From positions 180,234,001-180,298,000 of the forward strand of contig CM075978.1 in assembly GCA_038087875.1 (NCBI GenBank): a stretch of 64,000 nt of DNA, read 5' to 3'. Below the pieces are notes generated by a model. That model was not told where the DNA came from and did not search any database. It saw only the letters and a program-made list of their open reading frames with translations. Origin of the DNA: Malacoraja senta. Its lineage: Eukaryota. Positions 3,315 through 49,482 of the stretch are shown here, piece by piece (position 1 is the stretch's first letter; every line of letters begins with the position of its first letter). Both the position numbers and the translations under genes were made by a program.

Positions 3315-6300
3315 ATGCCGGTGAAAGCAATGGTTCGGTACATGGGTCTTCTTGCTTTGGTTTGTCAAGGTATGCTTAGTTTCTGTACCGATTTCGCTAA
3401 TCAAATCATATTTGTCAATATTTTACACTAGTATGCCACAGCAAATTAAATTTACAACGTTTCTGCAATTGCCTTACCACTATTTTCTAATTGTTTTGTA
3501 TTTGTGTATCCATTGGCTCTTTTTCTTGGTGCTGTATGTGCAACTGTTTTCGTCATATTTACTTATTTCTGCCACTGACAAAAGCAACTTCGAGCAAAGT
3601 GGAACAATTCCCCGCAATCCTGAAAGTCTCCAGAGGCAGAAATGAGTCCATGTTCTGCAAATTTCCAATATTAAAAGAAACCGCTGACGTTTCTTGGTGG
3701 AGAGGGGGCGAGAAGACATTTATGGAACCGGACAACAGAAAGCAATTCAAAGTAGACAAGGGAAGCAGTACGTTTACTTTGCTGAATGTGAGTGTCGCAG
3801 ACTTGGGGATGTATTACTGTCGAGTGAAAGATCAACTGCAACTTATCGGCAATGGAACTGGCTCCCAGCTAATTGTGTTAAGTAAGTTTCTTTGTTACGG
3901 GATATGTTCATCTGTTGCAATGTAACTAAAGCTTGCTTGTGGAGAAAATATTAATCTTATCTAGTTCTATAATTTGAATGGTTACTTCCGAGGTGAAAAT
4001 CTGAAATAAAGGGAACATACTGAAAAATATTCCATCCGTCGGTCAATATACGTGCAGCGAGAGTTCTGTTATAGTTTTGTTTTATTTACTCCGGGTTATC
4101 TTACAAAGTCATAGTGACGTTACCCTGGTTATTGCTCTTGTAAATTGGCAGGTCAATTTATATTTTGACCTCCAGCTTTTCAAATACCCAACCAAATTCA
4201 CGTTGCTCCGAATTTCCAGAAAGTTGCTAATTTCCCACCCGACAAACTTTCCCATCAACTAAAATCGGAGGAGAAATGGATCTCACAGTTTTGAGGTGGA
4301 TAATTTGGTTTACACTTTCACACTCTCCAGGAAAGTTCATGGAATGAAAAAAGAAAAAGAAGAACTACAACTGAAATTCTCCGATATTATTTCTTATTTA
4401 AAATAGATCCATGGTTATATCATCGTATAGAATAGAGCTTTGCTTGGTAATAATTTATATGGCACAAGGGAGTAAAAGGTGATATCGCTTTATTAATTAA
4501 TAATGATCGTACAATAAGATGTTATTACATCAATGAAAGAAAGTAAAAATGCTTAAAAACAAACGACATTAAGGAGATTACGCAATGAATTGACAAAAAA
4601 ATGTACAATTAACTCTCCCGCTCGCTAAATATTACTGACAGTGGCTCCAGCACAAATGGAACCATGTTCATTAATGTCTTGTTAATAAAATATATGAAAT
4701 GAGAAACAGAGTTTGCTCGGTTCATCCTTGCGTGTTTTTCGAGTAAATCGATTGTTGTCGCCGTTCTGCCATTCAGTGCAGTCCATTTTCTGTAACTACC
4801 ATATGCACATAAGAAAGAGCAAATGTTCAGAAGAAATGCGTGATTTTGAATTCAACATAAAGCACTGTCACGGAATCTTACCAAGCAATACATGTGTCAC
4901 ATTCCTTCATAATAATCGCGCGTACCCCGCGAGGCAGCAGTACTAAAGTTCACTCCATTCATGCTTTGTTTCAATTGCACTACTTATCTTGAATTCCTCC
5001 GTAAAATAATTTATAACAAAATTATAAACTCAACAAACAACCACACGAATAACAGGAGGCAACAGCAACTACTCAGCGACAATTATGTTAATTGAAATAA
5101 AATATATTTTATAGTTTCACGCTTTTTATATTGTTCCAGCTCCCCCAACTCCATTGAAAATTGTTGCTATTGAAGGAAGTGCACCGCATTTGCCGCAACT
5201 CGTGTGCAAAACGGCTGCGTTTTATCCAGAGAAATTAGAAGTTATCTGGCAAAGAAACAACGTGGAAATTTTGACCGGTATTGAAACCGTGAGAAACAGA
5301 ACAGCGGATGGATTTTATGAGGCTTCCAGTTTTTTGCACGATACGCAGCCTGCTCCAGGCAAAACTGTTTACACCTGCCTGGTATCACACATATCTCTTA
5401 CAGTCCCTGCCAGTTTCAGCTACATTGTCGAGCAAGGTAAGCCGGGAGGCATTTAACGCATACTCCAGCCGCCGAGAAATACAATCTGAACAAGGGTCTC
5501 GATCCGAAATGTCTCCCATTCCTCTCTCCAGAGATGTTGCCTGTCCCGCTGAGTTACTCCAGCTCTTTTGTGTCTATTTTCTAATACAATTAGATAGTTG
5601 TGCAAATACAAACATCCAGATCCTTTTCATATTTACTGGAACCTGCGGTGGCGGGTCCAGGGTGTCAGATCCAGAATATAGAATGCATTCTGACTTTTTA
5701 AACTGTTGTCAAACTACCGGGCGTAGTTTTGTAAAATGAAAATGAACAGTCATCTTAACTTAACCTCTGCAAAGAGCCACCGTATAATGTGATCTGTTCT
5801 ATAAATTCGTCATTACCGTACAGTGCGTGCCATGTGGCAGTCATAAAATCTTTGTGCAGAAAATATTGAACGATTGCTCTGCCTTCTTGTCTCCCGGTCC
5901 CTGTGTGTGTATTTATGTTTCACTGTTCTAATTTTTCGCCATATCCAGAAACCCCAGAAACCACGGACAAAACTCTAATTCTCGGATGTGTCGTGGGCGG
6001 ACTGTCATTTGTAGTTCTGCTTATAATTTTGACAAGATTCGCATTAAAGGCACAACGAGGTAAGAACCTTGTATAATTTTCCATTTCATACACCCGATAG
6101 AAAAGCGGTTGGTGCATTCTGAGAAGTATTGAAACAAGAATCTAGCTATTAGTTGTAAGTTAAACTACAATTATTTCCCCTGCCCTTTCGAATTATTCAA
6201 TCATCCATCGATTGTGTGTTTTTCAAACATCTATATTATTAGCGTGTTGATTTGCTTTAACGTCAAAATTTGAAGTATGAGTTATTTGGTGTAGACCTTC

Positions 6301-8583
6301 GCTTCCTCGGGTTGTGCAGATCTAACGCGGATTGTATATATGAAGGTAATGCACAACACATTACATTGTGGCGATGGTACTCCGATACGTATACGGGATT
6401 GTCGCTGCCTTCAAGGGTCCATAGGCAGTAGATGTGATTATAATCTAATACTGAACTTACATTTTCCTGACATTCAAATGTTATTCGAGATTTCTTTTTT
6501 TTCATGTAGGTATTAATGCAAACTCCGTGGAAGCAAGTCATAGCGTGGAACCGGTAGGTGAAGCTATTCTTCTTGTTTCCAAGAGGAATGGACGAGTACA
6601 GAAATTATACGATCAGCAGAGAATATATCAGTTTCATTCCATATAATTTTAGAACATTGCAGCGCAGAAGGAAACCATTTTGCTTGTCACCTCTAATATT
6701 GGAAGGGGCGCAGCGAGTAAACCTGCAGTCTCATAGTTCTGTCCTGATCAGGTTCAATCCTAATCTCCAACGGTACTGTGGGTGATTTGCATCTTATTCT
6801 TGTGTGGTTTTCGGCCGGATGCTCTACTCCCCTTATACCCCAAAGTAATGCGGATTGCTCGGTTACTTCGCTACTATAAATTGCGACCTAAGAATGAAAG
6901 TACATGAAAGTGCATAAGGGCAGACGATAAACTCGTCCCACTACCAGGTGCTCAAATAGGCCAGGTTGCCTGCGAGATACGGTGGGCACTGGGATCGCTG
7001 CATGAAATATATAGGGATGCCGGAAACGGCGACAACGGAGACTGAATAAGATGGCGGGAAGTGAGAAATTGATCGCATTTGGAGGAGATATTCTTCAAAT
7101 GAATCGCAAGCTACAATATTAATAAACAAGTTGAACACGGGCACTTTGAATCCTCTCGGGAAAGACATTCTGAGAAATATAATTGAATGCAGTTCAAATG
7201 GTATCGTGCCCTTTTTTGCAATTATTCTGTATGTTTATGTTTCAGACTCACTCTTTAAAACTACATCAGACACTCTGCTAACTGTGTTGAATATCACTTT
7301 CTAATAGGCTCGGCAAGCGTCAAGTGGAGATGCCTCTGCCTACGCAACACTAAACTTGAGTGAGGGCAAAAAAATTACCAAATATCGACGAAAGGAAGAG
7401 CATGTTGTCTATGCCGAGGTAAGGGCAAAGTATTTGCACGAAAATAATTCCAAGTAAATACCAGATGAAAGGAAATTATTTCCGTTGATTATGAAGTAAC
7501 CTTGTACGACTGTGGAAAAGCCGAAATGGCGAATTTCCAATTGTGACGTTGAAACCAAATAGAGCCGAACAACACATTCAGCTGCACGACGTCATCCCAA
7601 TGCAAAATTACCTTTATCTCTGTTCCCGGGTTTAATGTAGAATGCTGTCCAAAATTAATGGGAAATTAAGAAACAGACAAGGTAAGGAACAGCCAACCGG
7701 CTTTTCCACCCAACGGGCATATCCAGCGCCACGAAATATGAGAAATTCAGACAATGACAGGAGGAACAGATTGAAATTTGAATTCAGGAAATCCACCTTA
7801 ATAAGGGACAGGTGGCAGGAGGGCACTGGACCTCAGAGAGGTTTATTATATTATTTATAGAGTACTATGTTTACTTATTCTGTTGTGCTGCTGCAAGTAA
7901 GAATTTCAGAGTTCTATCTGGGACATATGACAAGCACTGTTGACAGTGTTTCCCTATTATCTAACAAAGATCACACAGTGAGAGAGATATTATGGCTTCT
8001 CCTCGTATATCCAGCCACAAGGTAAAACAAATTCTGGCCTTATGTGCTGTCATTTTGAACGTTATTTATTACATCCTCGCGGGTTTCCCGAGGTGCTCCG
8101 AATGTTTCGCACATCCCGAATCACGTGAGGGGTTGTAGACTAATTAGACATTTAAAATGTCCCGTGTTTAGGCAAGTGGTATAATCTAGGAGTGAGCGAA
8201 GTGTTGATGGCAATGTGGAGAGAATAAAATTGAATATTTTTCATGAATATTTGTGTTACACTGTTCGCTAGACCAAGAAAGGCTCCGCGGAAGACTGGAT
8301 AAATCATATGCACATAAACTCTTATACCTTATCTGCAATCTGGAAATGATAATTGTTGGTTATATTCCAATCGTATTGAAAAATCGATTGCTTTCCTAAG
8401 TCACTGTACAATGGGTTAACAGGCAATATTGAATATATTTCACAGACCAAACGAGGCGGAGATGACAAACTGACTTACGCCTCCCTGCAGCTTTCCAACT
8501 CCAAGGAAACATCGCTATCTAAGCACAATGACAAATACTCAGTGTACGCGGGTGTAAAGGTTTCAAGGAAAGCGAGAAGTTGA
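3315..8583 (+). CDS. Gene A: SIRP-like IgSF inhibitory receptor (leader-VJ-C1-TM-4 Tyr tail), ~371 aa, 8 predicted exons
   Basis: Exons 3315-3369 (MPVKAMVRYMGLLALVCQG), 3585-3881 (V), 5140-5436 (C1), 5949-6059 (TM), 6510-6553, 7308-7429, 7970-8021, 8446-8583. All introns are GT-AG, phases are compatible, and the 1116 nt total is open to TGA at 8581. Tail motifs: SAYATL, VVYAEV, LTYASL, SVYAGV. The donor at 7430 (AA|GTATTT) is weak, so the exon 6-7 join is the least certain part. Confidence 0.8.
3585..3881 (+). CDS. Gene A IgV exon with J-like end
   Basis: ATSSKVEQFPAILKVSRGRNESMFC...SWW...TLLNVSVADLGMYYCRVKDQLQLIGNGTGSQLIVL. B-strand Cys, C-strand Trp, DxGxYYC, GxGT/S motif; 297 nt, phase 1-1, AAG acceptor, A|GTAAGT donor. 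Confidence 0.93.
5140..5436 (+). CDS. Gene A Ig C1-set exon
   Basis: PPTPLKIV...LVCKTAAFYPEKLEVIWQRN...DGFYEASSFL...YTCLVSHISL. C1 hallmarks (CxxxxFYP, W, YxCxVxH); 297 nt, phase 1-1, TTCCAG acceptor, G|GTAAGC donor. Confidence 0.92.
5949..6059 (+). CDS. Gene A transmembrane exon (uncharged core)
   Basis: ETPETTDKTLILGCVVGGLSFVVLLIILTRFALKAQR; 111 nt, phase 1-1, G|GTAAGA donor. Confidence 0.85.
7308..7429 (+). CDS. Gene A cytoplasmic exon with two tyrosine motifs
   Basis: ARQASSGDASAYATLNLSEGKKITKYRRKEEHVVYAEVRAK after a CTAATAG acceptor. Phase 0 is supplied by the 44-nt exon 6510-6553 (GINANSVEASHSVEP). Alternative donor at 7419. Confidence 0.75.
8446..8583 (+). CDS. Gene A terminal cytoplasmic exon with two ITIM-like motifs
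   Basis: TTTCACAG acceptor, then TKRGGDDKLTYASLQLSNSKETSLSKHNDKYSVYAGVKVSRKARS*. AATAAA motifs near 8787 and 8832. Confidence 0.85.
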   Translation, partial: TKRGGDDKLTYASLQLSNSKETSLSKHNDKYSVYAGVKVSRKARS

Positions 8584-9799: not shown

Positions 9800-10027
9800 G
9801 TAGAAGAGCACGGAACAGAAACGATTCGTTAGGCCCACTGTGCGTGTGTGCCTTTGATGCCAATTTAAACTAAATCAACCAGTCTGCACATTATATATAT
9901 TTCCCCATTGCCTGTTGTTCATGTGCATGTCTAAATGCTCTTTAAATGTTGCCATCGTATCTGCGTTTGCCTTCTCTCCCTCCAGCAAGATCCAGGCACC
10001 TACCACCCGCTGTGTAAAAAAAATGTA

Positions 10028-11618
10028 TAAGGAGGTTGCACGGCAGTCGAGGTCACGACCCGTGACCCGTACTGTTGCCACGCAACGCATTCTGGAGTAC
10101 ACGCGGTGAACGTCAGGTAGGCACTTACTATGGCTGCCAATACAGCGGGCCCATATTCTGTTCCAGTATCCGGACTCCACGCTGACTGGTTTCACACTCG
10201 CGGACCCCCCGGGCCGTCCATCCCCGCGGCCGGGTGTGGGGGGAGGAGGTCGTGGTGCAGGTGCCGGTGCAGTGTGGTCAGTGACTCTGGGTGGGTGGAG
10301 GGACCAGACTGTCCCCAGCTCCGCTGCAGCTGACGGGGACGTTGCCGGGTGTTGGGGAGGGGGAGGTGGGGTGCGGGTAGTCGGGGTGGGGGTTGGGGTG
10401 TGGACGCGGGGGGCTGGGGATGGTCGGGGGCTTGGGGGGCGTGGGGGATGGTCGGGGCGGTCGGGGCGGTCGGTGGGGGGGGTCGGTGGGATGGGGGTCG
10501 GGGTGCCGGTGGGGGGGGGGTCGGGGTGCCGGTGCCGGTGCAGCGCGGTCAGTGATTCTGGGTGGGCGGAAGGACCAGACTGTCCCCAGCTCCGCTGCAG
10601 CTGACGGGGACGTTGCCGGGTGTTGGGGAGGGGGGGTGGGGTGCGGGTAGTCGGGTGGGGGTTGGGGTGTGGACGCGGGGGGCTGGGGATGGTCGGGGGC
10701 TTGGGGGGCGTGGGAGATGGTCGGGGCGGTCGGTGGGGGGGGGTCGGTGGGATGGGGGTCGGGGTGCCGGTGGGGGGGGGGGGTCGGGGTGCCGGTGCCG
10801 GTGCAGCGCGGTCAGTGATTCTGGGTGGGCGGAAGGACCAGACTGTCCCCAACTCTGTTGCAGCTGACGGGGCCGTTGCCGGGTGGTCGGGGGTGGGGTG
10901 TGGGGGGTGGTCGGGGGGAGGGGGTTGTTGGTCGGGGTGCCGGGGGGGGGGGGTCGGGGTGCCGGTGCCGGTGCATCTCGGTCAGTGTCTCCGGGTGGAC
11001 GGAAGCACTAGACTGTCCCCAACTCTGCTGCAGCTGACGGGGACGTTGCCGGGTGGGCGGGGGTGATCGGGGGTGGTCGGGGGGTGTGGGCGGTGGTCGG
11101 GGGGTCGGTGGGGGGTGGTGGTGGTGGTCGGGGGTGGGTGGTCGGGGGTGGACGGAAGCACCAGACTGTCCCCAACTCTGCTGCAGCTGACGGGGAAGTT
11201 GCCGGGTATTTGCCCCCATGTGTCCGTGCACGGAGCCCCGGTCACGCTCCACCGGGCCTCGTGTGTGGGCGTTGCCGACCCACAACCCGGGAGGGTGGGC
11301 GGAGGGCGGCCGTGGCCGGATAGCGCTCACCCCAGGCGGAGAGTAGGCGCTGTCCCGAGGGATGCGCTCCTTCGGCCACTTACATCTTGGTGCTCGGATT
11401 CAGAGCAAAGATACTAGAGCATTTGGATCAGAGTGCTCAGTCACCCTCCACGATTATTTACAGCGCAAAAATGGACCATTTCGGCGGTTTTTAACAGGTA
11501 AGAAAGTATTCGTTTCGTGTGTTAACAGTGTATGCAGGAGGCTGCCATGTCCTCCAGAAGGGTTGAGGTGCTACGCGCGTCACGCCCTTTGATCCGATGA
11601 TCTTATGCAACCCCCCTA
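10028..11618. mobile_element. Putative non-autonomous DNA transposon with an internal GC-rich minisatellite
   Basis: Imperfect 13-bp TIR (TAAGGAGGTTGCA / TGCAACCCCCCTA, 11/13 match). TSD not identified. Confidence 0.45.
10267..11205. repeat. GC-rich tandem array: ~83-bp core x4 plus a partial copy, with G-run spacers
   Basis: Core GTGCAGCGCGGTCAGTG...CCAGACTGTCCCCA.CTC.GCTGCAGCTGACGGGGACGTTGCCGGG at ~10267, 10538, 10801, 10971 and partially at 11149. Confidence 0.9.
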
Positions 11619-13215: not shown

Positions 13216-15214
13216 ATATTTAAGGGGTCAAGGGAGTCATGGATCAATTGTCATAAGAATCAACAATGGAACGATTACATTATTACTTGCAGCTGTGTAA
13301 CAGACCTCAATGAAGACTTCAAGCACAATAAACATAGATAATATATAATTAGTAAAATCTCAATAAACGAATCACTCCAATGCCAGTACAAAAAGCCAGA
13401 AGTCCTTCGTGCAACCAAATATAGTCTGTAGTCCATAGCTGAGGTTAGTGTTGTGTAGTGTTCAAGAGCTTGATTGCAGTTGGGAAGGATCTATTCTTGA
13501 ACCAGGCAGTCACGGGTTACAGACTTCTATTCATTCCTCCTGATGGTCGGAATGAAATGAGAGCATGGCAGGGTACTATGGGTCTTTTGGAATGATGGTT
13601 ACCTCTTTGAGGCAATACCTCCTATAGATCCCTTTGAATTGAGCAGGCCAGTATCTATGATTCACCAGGCAATGTCCACCACTCTTTGTGATCTCCTTAC
13701 TTCCTGAGCATTAGAGTTGTCGAACCAGGCTATTATTCAACAAGTAATACTCTACGAGATACATGCGTAGACGTTCAGGAGAGTATTCATACACATATTG
13801 AATTTTCGCAATCTTCTGAGGACGTAGAGGTACCCAACCTTTTTCGTCCCGTTTACCACTGGCAACTTTAATAGCACATAACAATGTTATTTCACGGCAG
13901 CCACATTACCTCTTCTTAATATGCCAATTCAACTCTTCATTTTCATGTCGCATTAGGTCATCTGTCCTAATATAAAATTATGATTATGAATACTCCAGTA
14001 AAATGTATTGTGATGTCTTCATATGCTAAAAGTACTGTGAAAAAAACAAATTGTTCTTATTCGTCACCAAGATCTGTCAAGAAAGGCGTTGGCCGACACT
14101 CCAAAAATATAGAAGCCATATTGACATTTTGAAGCCCAAGCCAAACTCTTGTTCATTGAGCATTGATAAATATATTGTAATTTTATTTTCAAATTGGTTG
14201 TGTTGTGCAGTCACAAGATAATGTACTGATGGCCGTATTGAATTGCATTCAGGGAGTAAATGAAACTGACAAGACGACTCACGTCTTTCTTCAGCATCCC
14301 AACTCCAATAAAACAGCAGTATCCACGCATAAAGGCAAAAGCGCACTTTACGCGAGTACAAATCCTTAAAGGAAAGCGAGAATTAATATTTGAAATAAAG
14401 TTTTTTGGTGCGAACCATTAGTAAGTGTAAGTCCAAAGTATTGTTTCGTTTCATTTATTGCATCCAGAGAAAACGCAGAGCTGTTACATATCAGGCCAAA
14501 TAAGAAATGCATTTCTGATCCCATTACAAATGAAAACACATTTTCTGGCTCATTTCACCACACGATCAGAAAAGATGCAGGTTTCGAATATGCATTGAAA
14601 GGAAGATTCACATTCACATTCAGTTTTCCAATCAAATTGAGCAATGTAATTTTATTGCTGGATTATCAGATCGTAGAGTTCTCACTTACCCGGTAACCCA
14701 TAAAAGGAACGCAAGCATTAAAATGCCATTTCAGTTAACGCCAACTACATAACAAGAGACCCGTGAAGCAGACAATTGTGAAATTCAGGGAATATTTCAC
14801 ATGTTTTGCACGACGTGCATATCTCTACAAACAAAGAACGGCACAGCACAGAACATGACATCTGGCCCAGGACTGTGTAAAACGTGCTTGCATTCAGAGG
14901 CATGTTATTTAGTATAAGATTTAGGTCATTATGTTGCTTCACTACTAGCCATTGGCTATGACACTCTTGAAATATTATGTTTGGTTCTGCTCACAACACT
15001 ATTGAAAGGTTTTGGTCGCGCTAGAAGAGTACAGAAGAGATTTGTTCGCGGTTTAAGATTGATGCAAAAAGCTGGTGTAACTCAGCGGGACATGCAGCAT
15101 CTCTGGAGAGAAGGAATGGGTGACGTTTCGGGTCGAGACCCTTCTTCAGACTTGTTGTGTTTATCTTCAGTTTAAACCAGCATCTGCATTTCCTTCCTAC
15201 ACATTTGTTCACGT

Positions 15215-19478: not shown

Positions 19479-22400
19479 ATGTCGGTGCAAGCAATCGTTC
19501 GGTACATAGGTCTTCTTGCTTTGCTTTGTCAAGGTATGCTTAGTTTATGTCCGATTTTGCAGAGCAAATCTTATTTTATAATATTTTACACTAGTTTGCC
19601 ACAGCAAATTAAATTTACAACGTTTCTCCAATTCCTTTACCATTGTTTCCTAATTGTTTCGTATTTTTGTATCTGTTGGCTCTTTATCTTGATGCTGTAT
19701 GTGCAACTGCTTTCATCGTATTTACTTGTTTTCTGCCACCCGCAAAAGCAACTTCGAGCAAAGTGGAACAATTCCCCGCAATCTTGAAAGTCTCCAGAGG
19801 CAGAAATGAGTCCATGTTCTGCAAATTTCCAATATTAAAAGAAACCGCTGACGTTTCTTGGTGGAGAGGGGGCGAGAAGACATTTATGGAACCGGACAAC
19901 AGAAAGCAATTCAAAGTAGACAAGGGAAGCAGTACGTTTACTTTGCTGAATGTGAGTGTCGCAGACTTGGGGATGTATTACTGTCGAGTGAAAGATCAAC
20001 TGCAACTTATCGGCAATGGAACTGGATCCCAGCTAATTGTGTTAAGTAAGTTTATTTGTTACGGGATATGTTCATCTGTTGCAGTGTCTTTGTTCCGGGA
20101 GGCGGGATATTTTTTATCTGTTGCAGTGTAACTAAAGATTGCTGGTGGGGAAAATATAAATCTTAGATCACTAGATTATGAACTGCATTAACTAGTTCCT
20201 TCCATAATTTTAATAGTTACTTGCGAGGTGGGATTTCGAAAGTAAGGGAACATGCTGAAAATATTCCACCCGTCGGTCGATATCCGCGAATGATTCTGTT
20301 ATTGTTTCGTTTTACTACGAATTTTCTTACCAATTCACATTGACATGGCCCCGGAGATTGCTCCTGTAAATTTGCAGGTCAAATTATAAACCCAACGAAA
20401 TATATGTTACTCCGAATTTCCAGAAATCTCCGTAACTACCACATGCATCTAAGAAAGAGCAAACGCTCAGAGAAATGTCTGGTTTTGAATTTTTTTTTTA
20501 AAGCTCTACTACAGGACCTTACCACGCAGTGAACCTGTCGCATCCCTTCAGAATAGTCTCGCGATTCCCACGTGGTAACAGCACGAAAGTTTCACTTTTG
20601 TGATTTGCCTCAATTATATTTGTCATCTTTATATCCACCGTAAAATAATTTATAACAAAATTATACAGTAAACAAACGACCACGCGGATAACAAGAGGTA
20701 GTGGCAACTATTCAGCGACAAATGTTCATTGTAATTAAATAAATCTTGCAATTTCACACTCATGTTTATTGTTGCAGCTCCCCCAACTCCACTGAAAATT
20801 GTTCTTTTTGAAGGAAGTGCGCCGCATTTCCCGAAACTCGTGTGTAAAACGGCGGCGTTTTATCCGGAGAAATTAGAAGTCACCTGGCAAAGAAATAACA
20901 TTGAAATTTTGACTGGTATAGAAACCGTGAGAAACAGGACTGCGGAGGGATTTTATGAGGCTTCGAGTTTTTTGCAAGATGCGCTGTCTGCTCCAGGCAA
21001 AACTATTTACACCTGCCTGGTATCACACGAATCCCTTACAGTCCCTGCAGGTTTCAGCTACGTTGTCGAGCAAGGTAAGACAGGAGGCATTTAACACACA
21101 CTGCACGGGGAATACGGTTAGATAATTGTTGAAACACTAAGGGGGGAAATCTGAATTGTATTTATACGCAGTGAAAGATTGAGTTGCTAGCTACCTATAG
21201 TTATGTAAATATCGTTTGCTCTCTCACCACTGCAAAGATAATCTTTGGAAATATATACTGACTGTCATAACTAAAGCAGTCACAAAACATTTCACAAGAA
21301 TTAAGATGTAAGATAAATCGCTAAGCTGCTCAGGGAGATGTCAGGTCAGATCACCAGTTGTGAAAAAAAGAAGCAGCGGTGAATTTCGTGGGCGAAGCTT
21401 GGCGCATCATCGTGGTAGAACAGGGAAATTCAGCCGGAGAGTGTATGAAATAAATGAACTTTTACGTACATTTTGAACTTTGGGCTAAAGTACCGGGCGC
21501 TGTGTTGTAAAAATAAATAAAATCCTTTTATCTTAATAAGCAAACCTCTTCACAATCTGCCACCGTGTGTGTGATTTGTTCCTTCAATAAATTCCAATAT
21601 TACCTTACAATTCATGGACAATGGAGGACCAGGCGTGGGGAGACCGCCGTGGAGAGGGGGAAGGGAGGAGGACAAATGGGGACCTGGCGCGGGGGTAACT
21701 TTGTAACTTTGTAAGCGCCCTTGGGTATGCAAGCAAATAATTTCACTGTGACGTGTCACATGTGACGACGAAGTATTGAATCTGTATTGAATATTTTATG
21801 CAGGGAGGGTGGATAGATACCTTAAAATGCTCTGCTTTCTTGTCTCCCTATTCCTGAATATGTGTTCCTATGGTTCACAGTATCTTATGTTTCGCCAGAT
21901 CCAGAAACCACGAACAAAACACAAATTCTTGGATGTGTAGTGGGCGGACTGTTAATTGTGATTCTGATTATATTTTTCACAAGATTCGGATTAAAGACGC
22001 AACAGGGTAAGAACGTTGCATATTTTTACCAAGTACTGCAATTTATCAGTTCTGTTCATTGATCAGAGACAGGGTACATTCTATTGCAGCGCGAAACACG
22101 ATTTCAAAGTCATTTACTGCTTGAAAATTGATAATAGCGGTCTTTCTTTCAAGAGAGAGCTAGATAGGGCTCTTCAAGAGAGAGCTAGATAGGGCTCTTA
22201 AAGATAGCGGAGTTGGGGGATATGGGGAGAAGGCAGGAACGGGGTACTGATTGTGGATGATCAGCCGTGGTCACATTGAATGGCGGTGCTGGCTCGAAGG
22301 GCCGAATGGCCTACTCCTGCACCTATTGTCTATTGTCAGTCAAACACGGAATCTGAACAGAAAATTATTTCATCTGCCCCACACCACCCTGACATCACAT

Positions 22401-24257
22401 ATAACCCTTAAAGGTTCCTTCCAGTTTCAACTATTTGGTCAAACAAGGACATGCAGGAAGCATTTTAAACGAGTTCTACATCAGATTAGAAATACAGCTG
22501 TGTAGTTGTTCAAACACGAGAGAGAGAAGTATGAATTGTATTATTTGTAGTGAAAGGCCAACGTGCAAGCTACTCAAAAACTAATACCTCATTCAATGCA
22601 TCCCGACTGAGATGAATTAACAACTTGAATTTATGTGCGGCTTATTTCATTGTAAACAATCGTGAGTATATGGGACTACGCGGCCAGATTCAGCTCAATT
22701 TCCATCTACAAATTTGCAGATGACACCACGGGTGTGGGCCGGATCGCAAACAATGGCATGTGCGTGTGTCCTTAGTTCTCGAATTCACTCTTAACCCCCT
22801 CTTTGACATTACCCATTGCTAAAATACTTCCTTGCATCTTCACCGTATCTGCACGCACGTCCTATTATGTGGATCGATGACAAATTATACTGTGTATAAT
22901 GCTTCTGCTTTTTTTTAAACTGATGTCTATTGCCTAGTGTAACAATATGAAATAAATAAATCTCTTCTTAACCTAAATCAATTATCCCCTATAGAAAGAG
23001 CTACTCTGTAACGTGACGCGTTTGCTTGATATTTAAAATTTCTATGTTTCTATGTTTCTAACCCATAATTGTTGCAATATGTATTTCCTACAATATTTTT
23101 TGGTAGGTTGGAGCGTCACTTTTCAATGCTCTGCCATTAGCTTCTACTCCCTGTATAATTAATGTCTCACGGTTTCTTATTTTTCACCTAATCCAGAAAG
23201 TACTTATAAAAGACTGATTCTCACACGTGCAGTGGGTGGATTGGTAATTTTGCTTTCGATTATAATTTTGACCAGATTAGCATGGACGGCACAACATGGT
23301 AAGCACCTTGGATTGTTCCGTTATTTCAATCCTATTTCTAGAAAAGAGAAAATATGCGTTTTTATTCGGAATTAAACAGAACGTCCATAGCATTTATCTA
23401 TTTGACAGTTGGCTATACCAGTGTAAATTGCGCCTTAAAATGCAATGATTTCACCATTCCATTCGAAGTATTCACTCCTGTCCTGAACCAATCCTTTGTG
23501 AACACCTGAGTTTATTCACCGAAATGTGTCCCTCGTGACAAAACGAGAGGAAACTGAGCGTCCGAGAGCAAAGTAACCAATTTCAATCTGTCCAAAAGGC
23601 CATGCCGGCTAATTGCAACAATCTGTGATCCGACTGACAAATGGAGGTGTATCAGTAAATTCAGAATGGGAATTTACACCGTGGGCTTGACAGATGAAAC
23701 TGGTTGCCAGCGATCAAACACAAATACATCAAAACGGCTCTGTGCAATATTAATACCACACATGGATAGTATCGTATGTGTTTAAGAATTTAACTAATCT
23801 CTCAATCTGGCCTTCAATGTCGCCTGTTTGACGTTTGTTCCTTCTCCTTATGACCCCGTGGATTTATTCCGGGTGTTCCTGTTTTCTAGCACATCCCAAA
23901 GATATGTGGAATGGTGGGTTAATTATCCCCTGTAAAATGCTCATCTGTTAGAGGACTTCTAAAATTTGGGGGCGGGGGAGAGGTTAATGACAATATGAAG
24001 CGAATAAAGTAGAATTTGGGTTAATGGGAGTTTGACGGTCGGCGCAGACTTGGATCCGCGTAATTACGACATAGTTCTGTGGACCATGATCGGCTCATGT
24101 GAAAATCGAGAAAAATATTGATATAAAATCCATATAACCTTTCTGCAAACTAAAATTGTTGAGTACCTTAGAATGTTATTGGAAAGAAAAACTATTGCTT
24201 TCCCGAGTCACTGAACGATGGACTAATGGCCGATATGAAATTACTTTCACAGACTAA
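19479..24257 (+). CDS. Gene B: paralogous leader-VJ-C1-TM receptor, predicted short-tailed activating type (~251 aa with TM2)
   Basis: Exons 19479-19533 (MSVQAIVRYIGLLALLCQG), 19749-20045 (V), 20778-21074 (C1), TM1 21899-22006 and/or TM2 23197-23298, terminal exon from 24253 (G+AC TAA). All open and GT-AG. The terminal exon choice is inferred. Confidence 0.72.
19749..20045 (+). CDS. Gene B IgV exon (protein-identical to gene A)
   Basis: Same translation as 3585-3881; only CTG>TTG and GGC>GGA differ. Confidence 0.93.
20778..21074 (+). CDS. Gene B Ig C1-set exon
   Basis: PPTPLKIVLFEGSAPHFPKLVCKTAAFYPEKLEVTWQRN...YTCLVSHESL; 297 nt, phase 1-1. Confidence 0.92.
21899..22006 (+). CDS. Gene B TM exon 1 (neutral, gene A-like)
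   Basis: DPETTNKTQILGCVVGGLLIVILIIFFTRFGLKTQQ; CGCCAG acceptor, G|GTAAGA donor, 108 nt. Confidence 0.78.
22140..22338 (+). mobile_element. CR1-type LINE 3' end between the two TM exons
   Basis: GAAGGGCCGAATGGCCTACTCCTGCACCTATTGTCTATTGTC tail; internal duplication of TCTTCAAGAGAGAGCTAGATAGGGC. Confidence 0.8.
23197..23298 (+). CDS. Gene B TM exon 2 (Arg-containing)
   Basis: ESTYKRLILTRAVGGLVILLSIIILTRLAWTAQH; ATCCAG acceptor, G|GTAAGC donor, 102 nt, phase 1-1. Not in the supplied ORF track. Confidence 0.75.
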
Positions 24258-24365
24258 AGGAGGGGGAGCCAACAAGCTGCTCCGCAGCTTCCCAACTACA
24301 ATAAAAAATCAGCAACTAAGCAAAACGGCAAACACGCAAAGGTTTCAAAGAAAGCGAGAAGTTGA
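24253..24365 (+). pseudogene. Decayed homologue of the gene A terminal ITIM exon
   Basis: Same TTTCACAG|AC(C/T)AAA start and AAAGGTTTCAA..AAAGCGAGAAGTTGA end as 8446-8583, but 25 nt shorter with both ITIM Tyr codons lost. Confidence 0.8.
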
Positions 24366-24869
24366 GAACCAACACACACTTCGTTTTTTGTGGACTATAA
24401 GGAATTACAGGTTCGAAGTATTGTTCCTTTGTATCCACTGCGTGCAGTCAAAACAACGATCGAGATCACAGGCATTATGATAAACTGCAGAAATTGTCGC
24501 TGAACATGTCAATTTACGGAGTGTTCAATGTTGAAAGCGATTGCAGTTTAAAGCGGATAGCAAAACTAAACACCTGCGCTCGTTTATTTAGGATGCTTTC
24601 AAACAACATTACAGATGGCGAGACTTCATGAACATTTCGCAACTCATTTCAAACCAAATGCCAATTAATTACATTTTAAAACGAAATAACTTTCCTTTCA
24701 TTAAATCACTTGCTTTTCCAAATCAAGCCATGGTTTATAGTTTATCAGCTGTTATGAAATGCGACTGCGTGGAGACAATCTACAGAAGGAACATTATCGC
24801 TGAACCGACAGAAGGCACATTGGAAGTCAGAGCATTTAATACAGACGTTGGGAGGCCATGTTGCAGTAG

Positions 24870-41527: not shown

Positions 41528-44500
41528 ATGTCGTTTGGAGCATCAGTTCGATACATGATTCTTCTGGCTACAGTTTGGCATGGTACTTTTAGATACATGT
41601 GGGGTTTCCGAATCTCATGTCATGTTTTATAATATTCTATTTTTAAAAAGACACAAAGTTCTGGAGTTACTCCGTGGGTCAGGCAGCATCTAAGGAGAAC
41701 GTGGATAGGTGACGTTTCGGGTCGAAACTACTTCAGAATCTAAAGAAGACTCTTGGCCGCTGAGTTACTCCAGCACTCTGTGTCTTTTTTTGTAAACCAG
41801 TCGGTGCAGTTCCTTGTATCTCCTTAGAATATTCTATGTTGGTTACCAAGCACGAAGTTAGTTACAGTGCTTCTTAATACGTTTATGGCCGATTCTAGTT
41901 TATTTTGAATTTTTCAACTCTTTGTTCATTTTGCTTGTCCGGATGGTCAACTGTTTTCCGTATTCTTGCTTAATTTCTGGCAGCCTTCGAAGTAACTTCA
42001 ACCAAAGTGGACCAATTCCCGAAAGACCTGACCGTCCACAGAGGAGACAATGTTTCCATGTTCTGCACATTCTCAATACAACAAGTTACTCCTGATGTTT
42101 ACTGGTGGAGATGGGGCGAGAAGACATTTATAGAACCAGACAGCAGAAAACAAATTTCTACCAAAAAGGGCAGTGCGGATTTCGTTCTCCTGAATGCGAA
42201 TGTCGCGGACTCCGGGGTTTATTATTGTAAAGTGAAACATCAGCAGCAATCTATCGGAGATGGACCTGGCTCAAGGCTCACTGTGTTCGGTAAGTGCCCT
42301 GTAAGGGAGAACTTTTAATCTTCCCGGGGAACAAGTAAAGCTCGCTGATATTAATAACATGACATTTTATAACTCGGCAAAAACTCGATAAGATTTATAT
42401 TATAAAAGCAAACCGTTCCAAATCTGATATATTTAAATAATCCGTAAGTGGGTCAGCATCTGTGTAGAGACAAAATGTCATTTTCCTCATTTCGTACTTC
42501 TCCAGAGAATTTCCCATTGTTCTCCTGTAGATTCGCGCTGTCCACTTTCGCGTTATTGCCCACGATCCAGATTCACCCTTTATTACCCCCCATGGTGTGC
42601 TTGAATGTATTAAATCAAATGACTTAGATTAAACTTTTTTTCGAATTGTTTTTCATGCAAAATTGAAAATGTTGAAGCCACGTGGATGTTTTAATCTTAA
42701 TTGTGATAGGAATGTCCCATTTCTGCTCCCGAAGACAACGGAATAACACCTCCATCCTGGATAGGTTGTTTAAAACAATATTCAAACGCCACCACTCTAC
42801 GCCAATAGTGGGTACAATCTCACAAGAATAGTGTTTACAGTCCATATTGATTCACACATAATTTTCGCTTTTTACGCGCCACCTTACAAATTATCTCCGA
42901 AATCTGTAACTTTATTCACTTAAAGTCTGGAAACAAGAAAATAAATTGATCTCTCGAAATTGGGATGTTAGAATATTCATTTGGGTTAGGTATCGTGGGG
43001 TATGTGACAACAGGGTTTGTGACACAGAGACCTGACGCACAAACCACCCACGATTGAATTGAACAACGGAGCGGCCTCGGCCTTAAATATTCTACTCTTT
43101 TATTCGTCTGCTGTAAACGAAGCTGAACCCCGTATCAAACCACCATGGTTATTATACAGATGAATCCTATAAACCGTTGAGAGGTTTGATTTGCTGGATT
43201 CTTACTCCAGGGACAGAATATCACCGTCTCACTCCGAGGATTCTCATTTAAACACTTAACCTTTGTAAAATACGTGTAAGATTTAACGGCATTTGGGGCA
43301 AACGCCAGGGCACCTGTCCTTACAATTATATTTAATACATGACTCAACCCTCAATCTCTCCACGTTTCCTCCCAATTATTCATTCTACCTAAATAGATCT
43401 GTGTTCGTGCCACAGATTAATTCTACGGGCCCTTTTTTACTCGTGGACATTTTTCATCATGCTAGAAAAACGCCCCGACCTACTTGATGGCACGACCTTC
43501 TATGGCCTCCATACGACCTCCTACGACATGTCTACGACTTACCTACGACCTCGTGCCGGCCATGCTGCGAGTATGAGTCAAGGGCAAACTCGGCAGAGGT
43601 CGTGAATTAGGTCGTGAAAGTGGGACAGGGGCACTCGCCGAGGCTGAGAATAAGCATGGAGGTCTCCTCCGAGTTCAATAAAGAAACTGATTCAACAACC
43701 TGTTACTAAAGAAACGGAATGTAAAAAGATTTAAAACTAAGATGATAAACTCGTAAAGTTGTCATCAACTCGCAGAGAGATTTAACAATAGGCCTCCTAC
43801 TAGCTAGATTGTAGATCCGATTGTAGATTGCGTTCGCAATTGACCCACTCTGAGCTGATATAAGTGAAATCTTATTCAGACCAAACGTCTTCAGCAAACC
43901 GAGTACATTTGGAAAATGGCAAAATTGTAGAAGAGACGTAGTCTAAGTTTGGATTTCCCATTCGCGTATTGTACTTATTGAAGAAGCGTCTAATATTTGC
44001 ACGGCGATACTAATTATCAGTAGATAGACACAAAAAGCTGGAGTAACTCAGTGGGACAGGCAGCATCTCTGGAGAATGAATGGGTGACGTTTCGGGTCGA
44101 GACCCTTCTTCAGACATCTGCAGTTCCTTCTTAATAATTATTAGTGTAACTATCATGCCTTCAAATTGCGCAGTTAGCGTTGTGGAGAAACGTCCCGGGC
44201 CAAAAGCTGTATCACTTGAGCCCTCCATCCCAGGTACTAAACAATTGTGTGGACCAAGCTCTCTTCTATGCAACTACGGCCTGCCTCGTGATAATTGATA
44301 TTGGTGATATCTGGATATATACCGCGCTACATTGGTTAGCGCTGCCCACAACTTCAGCGACCCAAGTTCGACCCAGATCATGCGTGCGTCCATATAATAG
44401 TTCTCCCCTTCAACGCGTAGACGTTCCTCCGGTGCTCCGGTTTATTCCGCGTGCCACTGATCTGCAGGTTGGTAGGAAAACTAGCCTCTGTAAATTGTCC

Positions 44501-47500
44501 CGGTTGATTGATCGTGGTGAGGAGTGAAGAGGAAAGTTGACAGGAGACGAAAATGGAATAAGTGGAGATGTAGGTTTAATGACGCAGTGGGTCATTTCGA
44601 CTGCTCTGTGCTGTGCTGTGTGTCTCTGTGATATTCCACTCTTCACGTATGCACCAAAATCTCGTAAAAACAGTCATTTTTGATCTGAACAGAAAAAGCT
44701 GTTACCAGCGATGATACACCCCCCCCCCCCCCCCCCCCCCCACCACGCTACTCATTTGGCACTTCAGAACATTGGAGATTATTCAGAACCCTGCATAGTA
44801 CCTACATCCAAATCTCGGATTCCTTATGTATTGCTTGGATATATTTCACTGTCCACAATAAGGTGAAATCTAAAACAATAACAAATCAGTGAATGTAAAA
44901 GCGATTGTACCGATAACCGATCTGATGGTGGGAGTGCAAGGTCGCGGTGTGACGAGGCAAACCAGAATGTTATCGTTGACATGGAAAGAAAATATTCAAC
45001 ATATTTTTTCTTCTGTTACAGCTCCGCCCACTCCCCTGAGCATTAGCCAAGTTAATGGCAGTTCGCCGCCAAAACTTGTGTGTCAAACGGCTGCCTTTTT
45101 TCCGAAGGAAGTCAAAATATCCTGGCAAAGAAATGGTGTAACAATTTTCACCGGGGAAAAACCTGTGAATACCAGTAGCGTGGAGGGGTTGTATGTGGCT
45201 TCCAGTTTTCTCGAAGTAACGAAGCCTACCTGGCGCGTTGATATTTACACATGCCTAGTGTCACATGTCTCCCTTGCGGTCCCGGCCAGAGTCGACTATA
45301 TCGTCAAGCCAGGTAAGACTGGCAAACAGAGCTGGGAACAGAGGGAGACCTCCGATCCGATTTAGAAATATTGTTGGATACAGCTCAAACTCGACGAGAA
45401 GGGCTGAATGTGAACCGTGTTTATTCACCGCGGGAGTTCGGGCAAACTGACGCATCTTATGCTATAATCTGTTTTCTAAATTATATCTGCATCTTCAATA
45501 TTTATAGTGTCTGTGACGTGGCTAAACCTTCAAGGCATTTGACAGAGGTGTTAGCAACCAAAAAATCATCATAAGGACACAATCAGTGAGATGGGGATAG
45601 AGGTACACGTTCTTTATAAATAGTCGGGAATTTACGTTGTAGTGTTGAGATATTTCACTATTTTGAGGGTATGAGAGAAGGTCTAGCTCAACTTGACTGG
45701 AGCAGGTTATTTGAGGGGAAAGAAACATCGGCCGTGGGATGTTTTTAAAAATGTACTGAAGAGAGCTCAGGATGTGTGCGTCCCCGTTAGAGTGAAAGGC
45801 AAAGCAGGCAAACGTAAGGAAGCTTGGCTGACGAGGGAAATTGTGACGTTAGTCAAAAACAAGAAGGATGCGTGGGACAGGTATCGGCAGTTGGGACAAG
45901 TGCATCCCTGGAGGAGTTTCGGGAACTAAGGAGCAAACTAAAAAAGGAGATCAGACGGGCAAAAATGGGCGAGGAGATAGCTCTGGCGAGTACCATAAAA
46001 GGCAATCCGAAAAGATTTTATAAATACATAAGCGGGGAAAGGATAATTAGAGAGAGAGTGGGACCTCTCAGGAATAAAAGCGGTCACCTCTGTGTGGAGC
46101 CACAGGAGATGGGTAAGGTTCTCAAAGAGTATTTCTCCTCTGGATTTACCAATGAGAAAACAGTAGGATGGAGGAAATTGGAGAAGTTACTGGAAGTGTC
46201 ATGAGAGCATCGAGGAAGTACTGTCGATGAAGTACTGAAGGTACTGTCGTGTTTGAAGATAGACAAATCTCTGGGGCCTAATCAGACATATCAGAGGACA
46301 TTGCGGTAAACAAAAGAGGAAATTGCGGAGGCCCTGGATGAAATGTATAAGTCGTCCTTAAATACAAGAGAGGTGCCAGAGGATTGGTGGGTGGCAAATG
46401 TTGTGCCTCTTTTCAAGAAGGACTGCAGGGAAAATGCTGGGAACTATAGGCTGGTGAGCTTAATATTTGTAGTTGGTAAGTTACTGGAGAGTATTCTGAG
46501 GGATAGGTCATACAGGCATTTGGATGGGCATGGGCTGATTAGGGACAGTCAGCATGGTTTTGTACGTGGAACGTCGTGTCTCACAAATTGGATTGATTTT
46601 TTTGAAGACGTGAGCAAAAAGGTTGATGAGGGCAGAGCTGTAGATGTTGTGTACATGGATTTTAATAAGGCGTTCGACAAGATGCTGCATGGTTGGCTGT
46701 TTTGGAAGGTTAGATCTCATAGGATCCAAGGAGAGATAGCTGAATGGGTAGCAAATTAGCTCCATGGAAGGAAACAGAGGGTGATAGTGGAAGATTGCTT
46801 CTCAGAATGGAGGCCTGCGACTGGTGGTGTGCCCCAGGGTTCGGTGCTGGGCCCGTTACTGTTTGTTATCTACATCAATGATTTGGATGAGAATATACAG
46901 GGCAAGATTAGCAAGTTTGCTGATGCTACAAAAATTAGTGGTTTTGCAGATAGTGAAGAAGGTTGTGAATGATTGCAGCAGGATCTGGATTGCTTGGCCA
47001 GGTGGGCAGAGGAATGGTTGATGGAATTTAATACAAAGTGTGAGGTGTTGCAATTTGGGAAGTCGAACAAGGGCAGGACCTAAGCAGTAAATGGTAGGCC
47101 TCTGAGTAGTTTTGTAAAGCAAAGATATCTAGGAGTACAAGTGCATGGTTCCTTGAAGTTCAAATCGCAGGTAGATAAGGTGGTCAAAAAGGCTTTTGGC
47201 ACTTTGGCCATCAGTCAGAGTATTGAGTATAGAAGTTGAGAGGTCATGTTGCAGTTGTATAAGACGTTGGTGAGACCACATTTAGAATATTGTGTTCAAT
47301 TCTGGGCACCATGTTATAGGAAAGATATTGTCAAACTTGAAATGGTTCAGAAAAGATTTACAAGGATGTTGCCAGGTCTAGAGGGTGCGAGCTATGGGGA
47401 GACGTTAAGTAGGCTGGGTCTCTATTCCATGGAGCGTAGGAGGATGAGGGGAGATCTTATAGAGGTAGACAAAATTATGAGAGGAATAGATCGGGTAGAT

Positions 47501-49482
47501 GCACAGATTGTACCCAGAGTAGGGGAATCGAGGACCAGAGGACATAGGTTCAAGGTGAAGTGGAAAAGATGTAATAGGAATCCGAGGGGTAAGATTTTCA
47601 CACAGAGGGTGGAGGGTGTATGGAACAAGCTGCCAGAGGAGGTAGTTGAGGCCTTGACTAACCCATCGTTTAAGAATCAGTTGGACAGGTACATGGATAG
47701 GAAAGGTTTGGAGGGTTTTGGACCAAGCGCAGGCAAGTGGGACTAGGGTAGCTGGGACATTGTTGGCCGGTGTAGGCAAGTTGGACCGAAGGGCCTGTTT
47801 CCACACTGTATCATTCTGTGACTCTATGACTCTACTCAGAGATGTGTGAATCTTGGTAATTCCCTACCTCGAAGCATTGAGGATGTTTGAACAGTGAGGA
47901 TTGACATTGATAGATTTCTGGACAGCTTGGATCACCATCAAGGACAAGGGCAGCAGGTGCATGTGAACACCACGGCCTGCAGGCTGCCTTCCAAATCGCA
48001 AACTAGCTTGACTTGGAAATGTATCACTCGTTGACATTTAATGCAATAACAATATTGTTCGTATTGGAAGCAAGATCTCGCGTTTATTTTGTACAGTGGC
48101 CATTTGCATAATATTATTATTTTATTGGGATATTTTTGTACTATAGTGACACTTGATAAAGCTCTTTACACAAATATAATTCTATAGTTTGTCCATTCAC
48201 TTGAGATAATTGTCTTATCGCTCAATTAATTTTTACGTCTGCAGGTTCGGCCCGCGTTGTCCATGTCCTTCGCAATGTAGGTGGTACATTGATCATTCTA
48301 CTGGTGTTGGCTACCTTGCGAATTGTTTTTGGATCAAGCTCTGCCAAAGGTGAATCAAGCTTCATTCTAGAGTTCATCTTCAAATTTCCTGTAAAATGGT
48401 GCTGCGGAGAATCAAATGACGCTACGTGAATTGATGCTATTTGGCCACAATTTACACATTGTTATTAACAAGGTTTCTATCGTGATCCCCAAATGGTACA
48501 GAATTATATCAGTTCTCCATCCCCAGACTCACAGAGGACAACAATTCCGTCAAGTCTCCGCTATCACCAGTGTTCCAAATTCACTTGTAAAAATCCAAAA
48601 TCAAAAGAGGGCATTGAAAGAGCTTAGAAAAATAAATTGTTAATGATCGTTAATATCAAGGAATACAATACTGTCTTCTAGTCGAACTGTTATAAAACGA
48701 TTATATTAATGGGAAAATAAATGTTCCAATAATGAAACGTCATGCAGAATTGAAAGATGAGAGTGGTTGTAATTTAGATGTCGCCACTTGGAGCGGTTTC
48801 CTTCCTCAAGTTACAGCTTTGTGCAACTGCTTATCTTGGGCCAATGCATATTGGATAAATTGGTTATTTCCCAATCGTTTGATTTAAAAGTTGTCGGCAC
48901 TATTGCCGTTCCTTCTTTCATGTTTGTGGTCAGTCGGGACTCCGCTGAATGTTATGATATCTGCATCTGCCCGAAGGATGGAGCCCAGCCGCGGCTGATC
49001 CCTGACCGATGAAGCGTTGGGAATGTCTTCAAAACTGACGTTCAGATAATTATTCAGAGTATCATTTAGTAGTGACTCTCTCGCCTTGACTACGAACCCA
49101 TCTGGAGACAAAGGCTACAAATCGATTTTAGTCGGGAGCACAAAATGGGTAATTGGGAATCGGCGCCAGTTGGATATCTTGTCGGCTCATAATAATAAGA
49201 GTTGTGCAAGAAAATATGTCAACATTCAAAATAACTCACGATCACCAAATCTGCACTATAGTACCCAATTAATTTGTCCATGTCTAGGCTCCGTGGTAAA
49301 GGTTGACCGATTGGTCGAGACATCAGAGCAAACAATGAACAGAGAGGAACATGGAAAGACCTCCGAGCATGTGATAGAAAACGGGTAAGAACGCTAGGGG
49401 ACGAGAAACTTATCACAATAATTCAGTTGATATAAACTTTAAATGTTTTGTTTCTTTAACAGATCGTGCTAGAAACAACTGA
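41528..49482 (+). CDS. Gene C: leader-VJ-C1-TM(Arg) receptor, predicted activating type
   Basis: Exons 41528-41582 (MSFGASVRYMILLATVWHG), 41984-42289 (V), 45022-45312 (C1), 48245-48349 (TM). A tentative tail exon at 49463-49482 (DRARNN*) is low confidence; another candidate acceptor lies near 48932. Confidence 0.7.
41984..42289 (+). CDS. Gene C IgV exon
   Basis: FEVTSTKVDQFPKDLTVHRGDNVSMFC...YWWRW...DSGVYYCKVKHQQQSIGDGPGSRLTVF; 306 nt, phase 1-1. Confidence 0.92.
45022..45312 (+). CDS. Gene C Ig C1-set exon
   Basis: PPTPLSISQVNGSSPPKLVCQTAAFFPKEVKISWQRNG...YTCLVSHVSL; 291 nt, TTACAG acceptor, G|GTAAGA donor. Confidence 0.9.
45580..47832 (+). mobile_element. CR1-type LINE ORF2 fragment in the gene C C1-TM intron
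   Basis: NYRLVSLIFVVGKLLESIL...GVPQGSVLGPLLFVIYINDLD...[14 protein letters not shown]; (TGACTCTA)n tail. Confidence 0.9.
48245..48349 (+). CDS. Gene C TM exon (Arg-containing)
   Basis: GSARVVHVLRNVGGTLIILLVLATLRIVFGSSSAK; TCTGCAG acceptor, G|GTGAAT donor, 105 nt. The RxVGG motif aligns with the other TM exons. Confidence 0.75.

Follow-up and report, generated by a model that had tools for sequence, protein, structure and literature searches.

A mosaic receptor gene with two tandem transmembrane exons in a SIRPalpha-like gene cluster of Malacoraja senta

Two transmembrane exons in gene B

The stretch of DNA analysed here, hereafter the window, comprises 64,000 nt of the 1.94-Gb genome of the cartilaginous fish Malacoraja senta (contig C2, 180.234-180.298 Mb) and contains members of a receptor gene family with a common architecture: leader, V exon with a J-like motif joined in the germline, a single C1-set exon, transmembrane (TM) exon and tail exons. 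One of these members, gene B, carries two TM exons in tandem, and it is the origin and the possible use of this pair that concern us. With the exons of its neighbour, gene A, as tblastn queries, we located gene A itself (V ~3578-3900, C1 ~5130-5440, TM 5954-6061) and the V and C1 exons of gene B (19749-20045 and 20778-21074). The features of gene B are as follows.

19479..19533, + strand: leader exon, intact (MSVQAIVRYIGLLALLCQ, donor GTATGC), homologous to the gene A leader at ~3315
19749..20045, + strand: V exon, phase 1-1; germline J-like motif ..GNGTGSQLIVL; 96-99% identity to the V exon of gene A
20778..21074, + strand: C1-set exon, phase 1-1; Pfam C1-set 37.3 bits, cut-off 21; 85% amino-acid identity to gene A C1
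21899..22006 (108 nt), + strand: TM1 exon, neutral (Cys, TGT), phase 1-1, no stop; 83-84% nt identity to the gene A TM exon
~22148..22337, + strand: very high-copy repeat (family D4) where the two duplicated blocks meet; 3' part of an interspersed element, containing an internal tandem copy of 25 nt
22363..22447, + strand: relic (~85 nt) of the 3' end of a dead C1 exon; tblastn E 0.002, blastn E 5e-8 against gene A and 1e-18 against gene B
23197..23298 (102 nt), + strand: TM2 exon, its Arg codon (CGT) aligned with the Cys codon of TM1, phase 1-1, no stop; 69.6% identical to the gene A and TM1 exons, with no indels
24253..24320, + strand: last exon, homologous to the gene A exon with immunoreceptor tyrosine-based inhibitory motifs (ITIMs); AATAAA at 24300, 3' end probably at ~24320

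A first-pass annotation of this DNA had described two tandem TM exons with Cys and Arg at the aligned codon, good splice sites, phase 1-1 and lengths divisible by 3, and all of this holds: both exons are intact, flanked by AG and GTAAG, and 108 and 102 nt long. TM1 encodes ..ILGCVVGGLLIVILIIFF.. and ends at the donor AGG/GTAAGA (the slash marks the exon boundary), and TM2, which encodes ..ILTRAVGGLVILLSIIIL.., follows a pyrimidine-rich acceptor (..tttcttatttttcacctaatccag) and ends at ATG/GTAAGC. The TGT codon of TM1 aligns with the CGT codon of TM2 two residues ahead of a conserved V-G-G. In TM1, an alternative in-frame AG lies 6 nt downstream (21904/21905), at the site used by every other family member, and gives an exon of 102 nt (21905-22006).

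The regions around the two exons are linked by two collinear blocks, 21009-21194 against 22381-22573 (66.5% identity with gaps, E 1e-18) and 21771-22021 against 23067-23313 (67% with gaps, E 1e-28; 72% ungapped over 152 nt), the middle parts of the two introns being no longer alignable. The duplication of an intron plus exon block, also proposed in the first pass, is thereby confirmed, with the addition that the first block begins within the C1 exon, a start that had been overlooked and that leaves a decayed C1 3' end upstream of TM2. Past this relic, homology to the start of the C1-TM intron runs on to ~22573. Aligned to all eight C1 ends of the family, the relic shows frameshifting insertions of 7 nt and 1 nt, an in-frame stop and a donor changed from GT to GA, and on its 5' side it is cut off beside the high-copy repeat fragment at 22148-22337, which in all sequencing runs reaches a depth of 1e5-1e7 and shows loose ends at 22173 and 22337. 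A further 30-nt match links 22037-22066, just past TM1, to 20747-20777, where the V-C1 intron ends with its AG, and its two members are 1290 nt apart, as are the TM exons. The match is marginal (equalled by 18 of 500 shuffles), and the sequence behind it has no similarity to C1 coding DNA.

Short intronic motifs recur at fixed places around these exons: ..TTAGAAATA..TCAAACACG.. stands ~60-110 nt past each C1 donor (e.g., 21111-21195 and 22491-22575) and ..ATGCTCTGC.. ~70 nt before each TM acceptor (e.g., 21820-21840 and 23124-23134). All three are common to most of the eight paralogues, although the remaining intron has turned over, and they may be splicing control elements for the inclusion of the TM exon.

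Divergence along gene B and its mosaic structure

The resemblance of gene B to gene A changes abruptly behind TM1. From upstream of the leader to TM1, non-coding identity between the two genes is 81.4% over 1083 aligned nt (84% around TM1), and homology at this level ends ~20-40 nt past the TM1 donor. Beyond that point, identity to gene A is 70.7% for the C1 relic, 69.6% for TM2, 70.5% for the upstream flank of TM2 and 71.9% (over 256 nt) for the last exon, which at ~3.9 standard errors under 81.4% behaves as TM2 does and unlike the 5' block. Synonymous divergence (dS) is 0.28 between TM1 and the gene A exon and 0.62-0.65 between TM2 and either of them. In a likelihood tree of nine TM exons with their flanks, gene A pairs with gene Z, a family member upstream of the window, with a support of 100; TM1 joins this pair with 82, and TM2 branches off next, before gene D and three more distant members. 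Gene B is shown by these comparisons to be a mosaic of two sister gene lineages, and TM2 to be an older sister of the whole group formed by A, Z and TM1, neither a twin of TM1 nor a relative of the TM exon of gene C.

As an alternative to regulated splicing, the first-pass annotation had considered a chimera in which unequal crossover joined the 5' half of an inhibitory-type gene to the 3' half of an activating-type one, and had named as its check a TM exon phylogeny in which TM2 would group with gene C rather than with TM1. The chimera is largely borne out by the step from ~81% to ~70-72% identity to gene A and by the place of TM2 outside the A/Z/TM1 clade; the proposed crossover and the grouping with gene C are not. 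The phylogeny returned neither of the two expected answers, TM2 being sister to A, Z and TM1 together. The candidate TM exon of gene C (48245-48349, phase 1-1, ..VLRNVGG..) does have an Arg two residues ahead of the V-G-G. Its identity to TM2 is 38%, no homology was found between the flanking DNA of the two exons, and at the DNA level the gene C exon is unique in the genome; an assignment of TM2 to the gene C type was rejected on these grounds.

Homologous unequal crossover is excluded as the origin of the mosaic because it would leave neither a C1 relic nor a second TM exon. A plain internal tandem duplication in gene B, with a last exon orthologous to that of gene A, is disfavoured by the divergence of that exon, which is not at the 81% level. 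We infer one of two other origins. The mosaic could result from a non-homologous fusion or deletion between neighbouring genes, in which an A-type block, from the promoter to just past TM1, would have been placed before an older neighbour that had lost its V exon and most of its C1. It could also go back to an old tandem duplication of C1, intron and TM exon whose upstream copy was later overwritten by conversion from the gene A lineage. Both routes yield an identical present-day structure. Either way, the 5' block (leader, V, C1 and neutral TM1) would belong to, or have been overwritten by, the gene A lineage, and the 3' block (truncated dead C1 end, Arg-bearing TM2 and a decayed ITIM exon supplying only an Asp and a stop) would come from an older sister lineage that was already activating in design, with a basic membrane residue and a tail of ~10 residues. 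The V exons of genes A and B, with 96-99% amino-acid identity against 81% in the DNA around them, look like the product of a recent conversion.

Possible products and the state of TM2

What gene B could make depends on its last exon as much as on its TM exons. The tail of gene A has four ITIM-type tyrosines, in SAYATL and VVYAEV (exon near 7308-7418) and in LTYASL and SVYAGV (last exon, from 8447). The last exon is the only gene A tail exon with a homologue in gene B; for the others none was found. The homologous region is 24142-24382, where deletions of 10 nt and 15 nt take out both tyrosines. Entered in phase 1, the last exon of gene B reads G/AC TAA, an Asp followed by a stop (24253-24257), and since all junctions are in phase 1, transcripts with neither TM exon, with TM1, with TM2 or with both would all be in frame, end alike and lack any ITIM. 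The first pass had called the TM1 form signalling-null, which is correct for any isoform of this gene, the last exon being read as Asp-stop and both ITIM tyrosines having been lost. With TM2 the C-terminus would be ..TRLAWTAQH-D-stop, so that, provided TM2 is used, a basic helix residue is combined with a short tail devoid of ITIMs.

The common phase also means that TM1 and TM2 behave as cassette exons. Joining C1 to TM2 would give an activating-type receptor, its Arg presumably coupling to an Asp-bearing adaptor with an immunoreceptor tyrosine-based activation motif (ITAM), and this form would be the counterpart of the inhibitory gene A with nearly the same V domain. Joining C1 to TM1 would give an anchor without a signalling motif, and omission of both exons a secreted product, as annotated for a Narcine isoform without the TM segment. 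The genome does encode a TM dimer exon of the CD3zeta/FcRgamma type with the Asp (..CYVLDAILFIYG.., PF11628, 58 bits; L010:1501-1587, C5:19864556-19864642), a candidate adaptor for Arg-bearing receptors that makes such coupling feasible. We infer that TM2 is spliced into mRNA and that its product pairs with an adaptor of this kind; the joint proposal, that gene B is a mosaic and that TM2 contributes to a functional activating-type product, is one that we hold tentatively, at slightly less than an even chance.

Our best reading of TM2 is that of a live exon giving an activating-type receptor. Over its 102 nt it has no lesion and retains its AG and GTAAG, with a pyrimidine tract longer than that of TM1, whereas the adjoining 85-nt relic has acquired at least three disabling lesions; the hydrophobic core and the GG motif are also kept. 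When an A-type exon was mutated at random with the observed 31 changes, at most one polar or charged core residue was found in only 4.8% of trials, and hydrophobicity equal to or above that of TM2 in only 1.9%. Between the two copies, the 35 nt before and the 15 nt after the exon are 77-80% identical, against 69.6% in the exon itself. An Arg at this exact position of the helix recurs in annotated relatives, in Mobula (..LILERAAGG.., in short-tail and long-tail forms) and in Scyliorhinus (..IIGRVGG..). Finally, the block formed by C1 relic, TM2 and last exon is found on single contigs of ~2.1 kb, at ~94-95% identity, in DNA runs of three related organisms (X9, X11 and X14; ~5% diverged) that also carry the TM1 block, so the truncated C1 beside the repeat is older than the splits between those species. 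A further run, X8, yielded one low-depth genomic piece; the joints seen in DNA contigs are repeat artefacts and not splice joints. TM2's open frame, used as a protein query to detect open reading frames on the relatives' contigs, gave no match.

Several observations weigh against a live TM2. The contigs of the relatives break at repeats and do not show directly whether TM1 and TM2 are neighbours there. Searches of sequencing runs with the whole of gene B and with the C1 exon alone returned no RNA run matching the locus, the matching runs being DNA. The dN/dS of the TM exons is 0.5-0.6, which over ~100 nt is indistinguishable from 1 for want of power, and a frame of 102 nt is open by chance ~20% of the time. 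Much of the good state of TM2 could date from before the rearrangement, when the exon lay inside an intact gene. TM1 too has strong splice sites and has kept its hydrophobic character (P 0.004-0.07 in the same mutation test), so that products with TM1 only, or with TM1 and TM2, are equally possible.

Some of these points would also suit an unused relic: gene B would be expressed as V-C1-TM1, the old last exon would serve only to provide a stop and a poly(A) site, and TM2 would be skipped or be debris of the rearrangement within an intron. A dN/dS not significantly below 1 and a frame whose openness is not a rare event are as expected for such debris, and the C1 relic just upstream is clearly dead. 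There is other debris in the cluster, namely an orphan decayed tail exon at ~14250-14385 and gene Z, with its frameshifted C1 and a stop in its TM exon. We nevertheless consider this explanation unlikely, as the contrast between TM2 and the relic beside it, the retained core and GG motif, and splice sites that would by default lead to inclusion rather than to skipping all speak for an exon in use.

If TM2 is used, the manner of its use has to be considered. The first pass favoured regulated mutually exclusive splicing, with one of the two exons per transcript, by which the gene would make either a neutral decoy without a tail or an activator coupled to an adaptor. Mutually exclusive pairs of tandemly duplicated exons are a well-known general class, and TM1 and TM2 resemble them in being adjacent, homologous (69.6% identical), equal in phase and nearly equal in length, with good splice sites; both also retain transmembrane character above random expectation. 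Moreover, skipping of the TM exon is annotated for a family member of another ray, Narcine, whose isoform X4 lacks a TM segment that is present in X2. The pair differs from the known class in that no bar to double inclusion was found, whether by frameshift, by steric hindrance or by RNA pairing: each exon has a length divisible by 3 and all combinations reach their stop in the last exon, the intervening intron has 1190 nt, and a search for competing RNA pairing yielded only two weak AT-rich inverted repeats of 18-19 nt. The two exon lineages also split before genes A and B did, and are not the recent in-gene duplication that is typical of such pairs. A strict switch appears rather improbable.

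The same features, strong sites at both exons and lengths that are multiples of 3, would also suit constitutive inclusion of both exons. Its product would be a two-pass hairpin with the ectodomain outside, a basic loop inside and a C-terminus of 10 residues outside, or else the misfolded product of a gene that is becoming a pseudogene. The junction loop, ..TRFGLKTQQ-E-STYKR.., has a net positive charge that would fit a cytoplasmic position. On the other side, no family member with two hydrophobic segments was found in protein databases, and an Arg without a partner would be unfavourable in the second helix. The V and C1 exons of gene B are under constraint (dN/dS 0.35 for C1 against gene A) and the V exon is nearly identical to that of gene A, which argues for a working receptor. 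Double inclusion as the rule is in our view very unlikely.

The most far-reaching possibility is that this one gene amounts to a whole paired-receptor system, in which cassette choice would derive four in-frame products from one V-C1 ectodomain: secreted, neutral anchor, Arg anchor with an ITAM adaptor, and double-pass. We regard it as a long shot. If true, the sign of the signal would be set by splicing and not by the choice of gene, opposite an ITIM-bearing neighbour with the same V domain.

The receptor cluster and known paired receptors

With the C1 exon of gene B as query, a search of the whole genome recovered eight close family members, all on the + strand at 180.14-180.30 Mb. Within the window, the gene A exon queries also located gene C (V ~41926-42294, C1 ~45000-45323) and the start of gene D (V ~62699-63058). 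The closest annotated proteins are those of rays and sharks, headed by Narcine (64%) and Mobula (63%), which match the C1 of gene B (C1-set domain starting ..PPTPL..) with E 1e-29 to 1e-34, and followed by Pristis, Hypanus, Hemitrygon, Heterodontus, Scyliorhinus and Callorhinchus. A search for close relatives with annotation found only these other rays and sharks, at no more than 66% identity, and among them no RNA-supported model of a gene B orthologue. Their names, 'tyrosine-protein phosphatase non-receptor type substrate 1-like' (SIRPalpha-like; NCBI) or 'NCR3LG1-like', are automatic.

The gene B V exon ends in ..IGNGTGSQLIVL, which agrees with the J-like pattern G-x-G-T/S-x-L-x-V, and in Pfam it scores above the cut-off for Ig/I-set (31.6 bits) and just under it for V-set (22.8 bits, cut-off 26). 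Genes A, B, C and D have a single C1 exon between V and TM, as do the annotated relatives, and none of them has the V-C1-C1 ectodomain of three Ig domains that characterises mammalian SIRP proper. Genes A and B are neighbours with near-identical ligand-binding domains, as befits paired receptors. We regard the family as an eight-gene cluster of SIRPalpha-like VJ-C1 paired receptors of cartilaginous fish, and gene A as the ITIM-bearing partner of gene B. In the literature we found no paper on this combination of germline VJ, one C1 and an ITIM tail; UrIg and UrIg2 (PMC12227049), with several C domains and a different architecture, were set aside as a possible identity.

The tail model of gene A, including the exact acceptor of its first tail exon, is provisional: the first AG ahead of the SAYATL exon (7300-7320), entered in phase 1, gives a stop, and the ITIM frame needs either an AG 10 nt further on (..ggcaag/CG) or an extra small exon, such as 6511-6558. 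Elsewhere the cluster contains debris of rearrangements. An orphan homologue of the last (ITIM) exon of the family stands at 14191-14385, between genes A and B, with no V, C1 or TM exon nearby; its first tyrosine is gone (..TTHVFL..), its second survives outside the consensus context (..SALYAST..), and it is probably what remains of a deleted member of the family. Gene Z (L008, C2:180209000-180218999; C1 at L008:2578-2861, TM exon at L008:3386-3490) is A-like, with 94% nt identity across the aligned 102-nt columns of the TM exon; its helix, ..LILRCVVGG.., has an Arg one residue before the Cys, a TAA stop stands just past the helix, and a frameshift breaks its C1 exon. Gene Z is thus a pseudogene or else represents another, independent way of arriving at an activating-type form. 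In genes C and D, V and C1 are ~73-80% identical at the DNA level, a similarity that continues until ~170 nt past C1, where the two genes diverge (window 44763-45490 against L009), gene D having a neutral TM exon of the family type (L009:5781-5879) and gene C an Arg-bearing candidate unrelated to that of the family. These two genes may represent another pair of inhibitory and activating receptors, one for which a foreign anchor exon was recruited. Apart from these genes, the window has at ~9880-11400 a GC-rich region (0.64) with long overlapping open frames on both strands, rich in Pro, Gly and Thr, which resembles a low-complexity tandem array.

The closest known parallel is that of the mammalian paired receptors SIRPalpha and SIRPbeta. 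As in these, the N-terminal V domain carries a germline J-like motif and precedes C1-set sequence; the inhibitory member, here gene A, has four cytoplasmic ITIM-type tyrosines, and its partner, here gene B by way of TM2, combines a V domain nearly identical to that of gene A with a basic membrane-helix residue and a tail that is very short. The fish genes differ in having one C1 domain rather than two and Arg rather than Lys, and in that the activating-type helix shares a gene with a neutral one instead of residing in a gene of its own. A second parallel is human FCGR2C, a chimera of FCGR2B (5') and FCGR2A (3') formed by unequal crossover: like it, gene B is a mosaic receptor with an ectodomain half from an inhibitory-type gene and a membrane and tail half from an activating-type neighbour. 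A homologous crossover leaves a single copy of each exon, whereas gene B keeps a C1 relic and a second TM exon; its join would thus have been non-homologous, or a duplication followed by conversion.

Inhibitory-type receptors remodelled at their membrane and tail exons are also known among the equine CEACAM1 paralogues, which have become non-inhibitory through stops in or after the TM exon, omission of ITIM exons, or skipping of the TM exon to give secreted forms (PMC5856374). These belong to another gene family, and no tandem pair of TM exons is described in that paper. Within the VJ-C1-TM family itself, the Arg-bearing models of Mobula (P0153, 252 aa with a short tail; P0154, 346 aa with a long tail) and Scyliorhinus (P0176) have their Arg at the TM2 position, with the GG motif two residues on, like gene B; unlike it, each has a single TM segment, and one of them pairs the Arg with a full ITIM tail. 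The evolutionary logic of gene B is shared with SIRPalpha/SIRPbeta, FCGR2C and CEACAM1, and what it adds is the presence of both anchor types in one gene, a join scar that is still visible, and its occurrence in a cartilaginous fish.

Activating immune receptors are thought to evolve repeatedly from inhibitory ones by swaps of membrane and tail exons, but intermediate stages are seldom observed. Gene B has the look of such a stage, preserved in a jawed-vertebrate lineage that is among the oldest: an A-type ectodomain block with its own neutral anchor stands before an Arg anchor and a dead ITIM exon that derive from an older sister gene, and the C1 relic still marks where the two were joined. 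If both anchors are used, gene B would be a simple case of splicing setting the polarity of a receptor; if only one is used, it would still date and document the assembly of a paired receptor.

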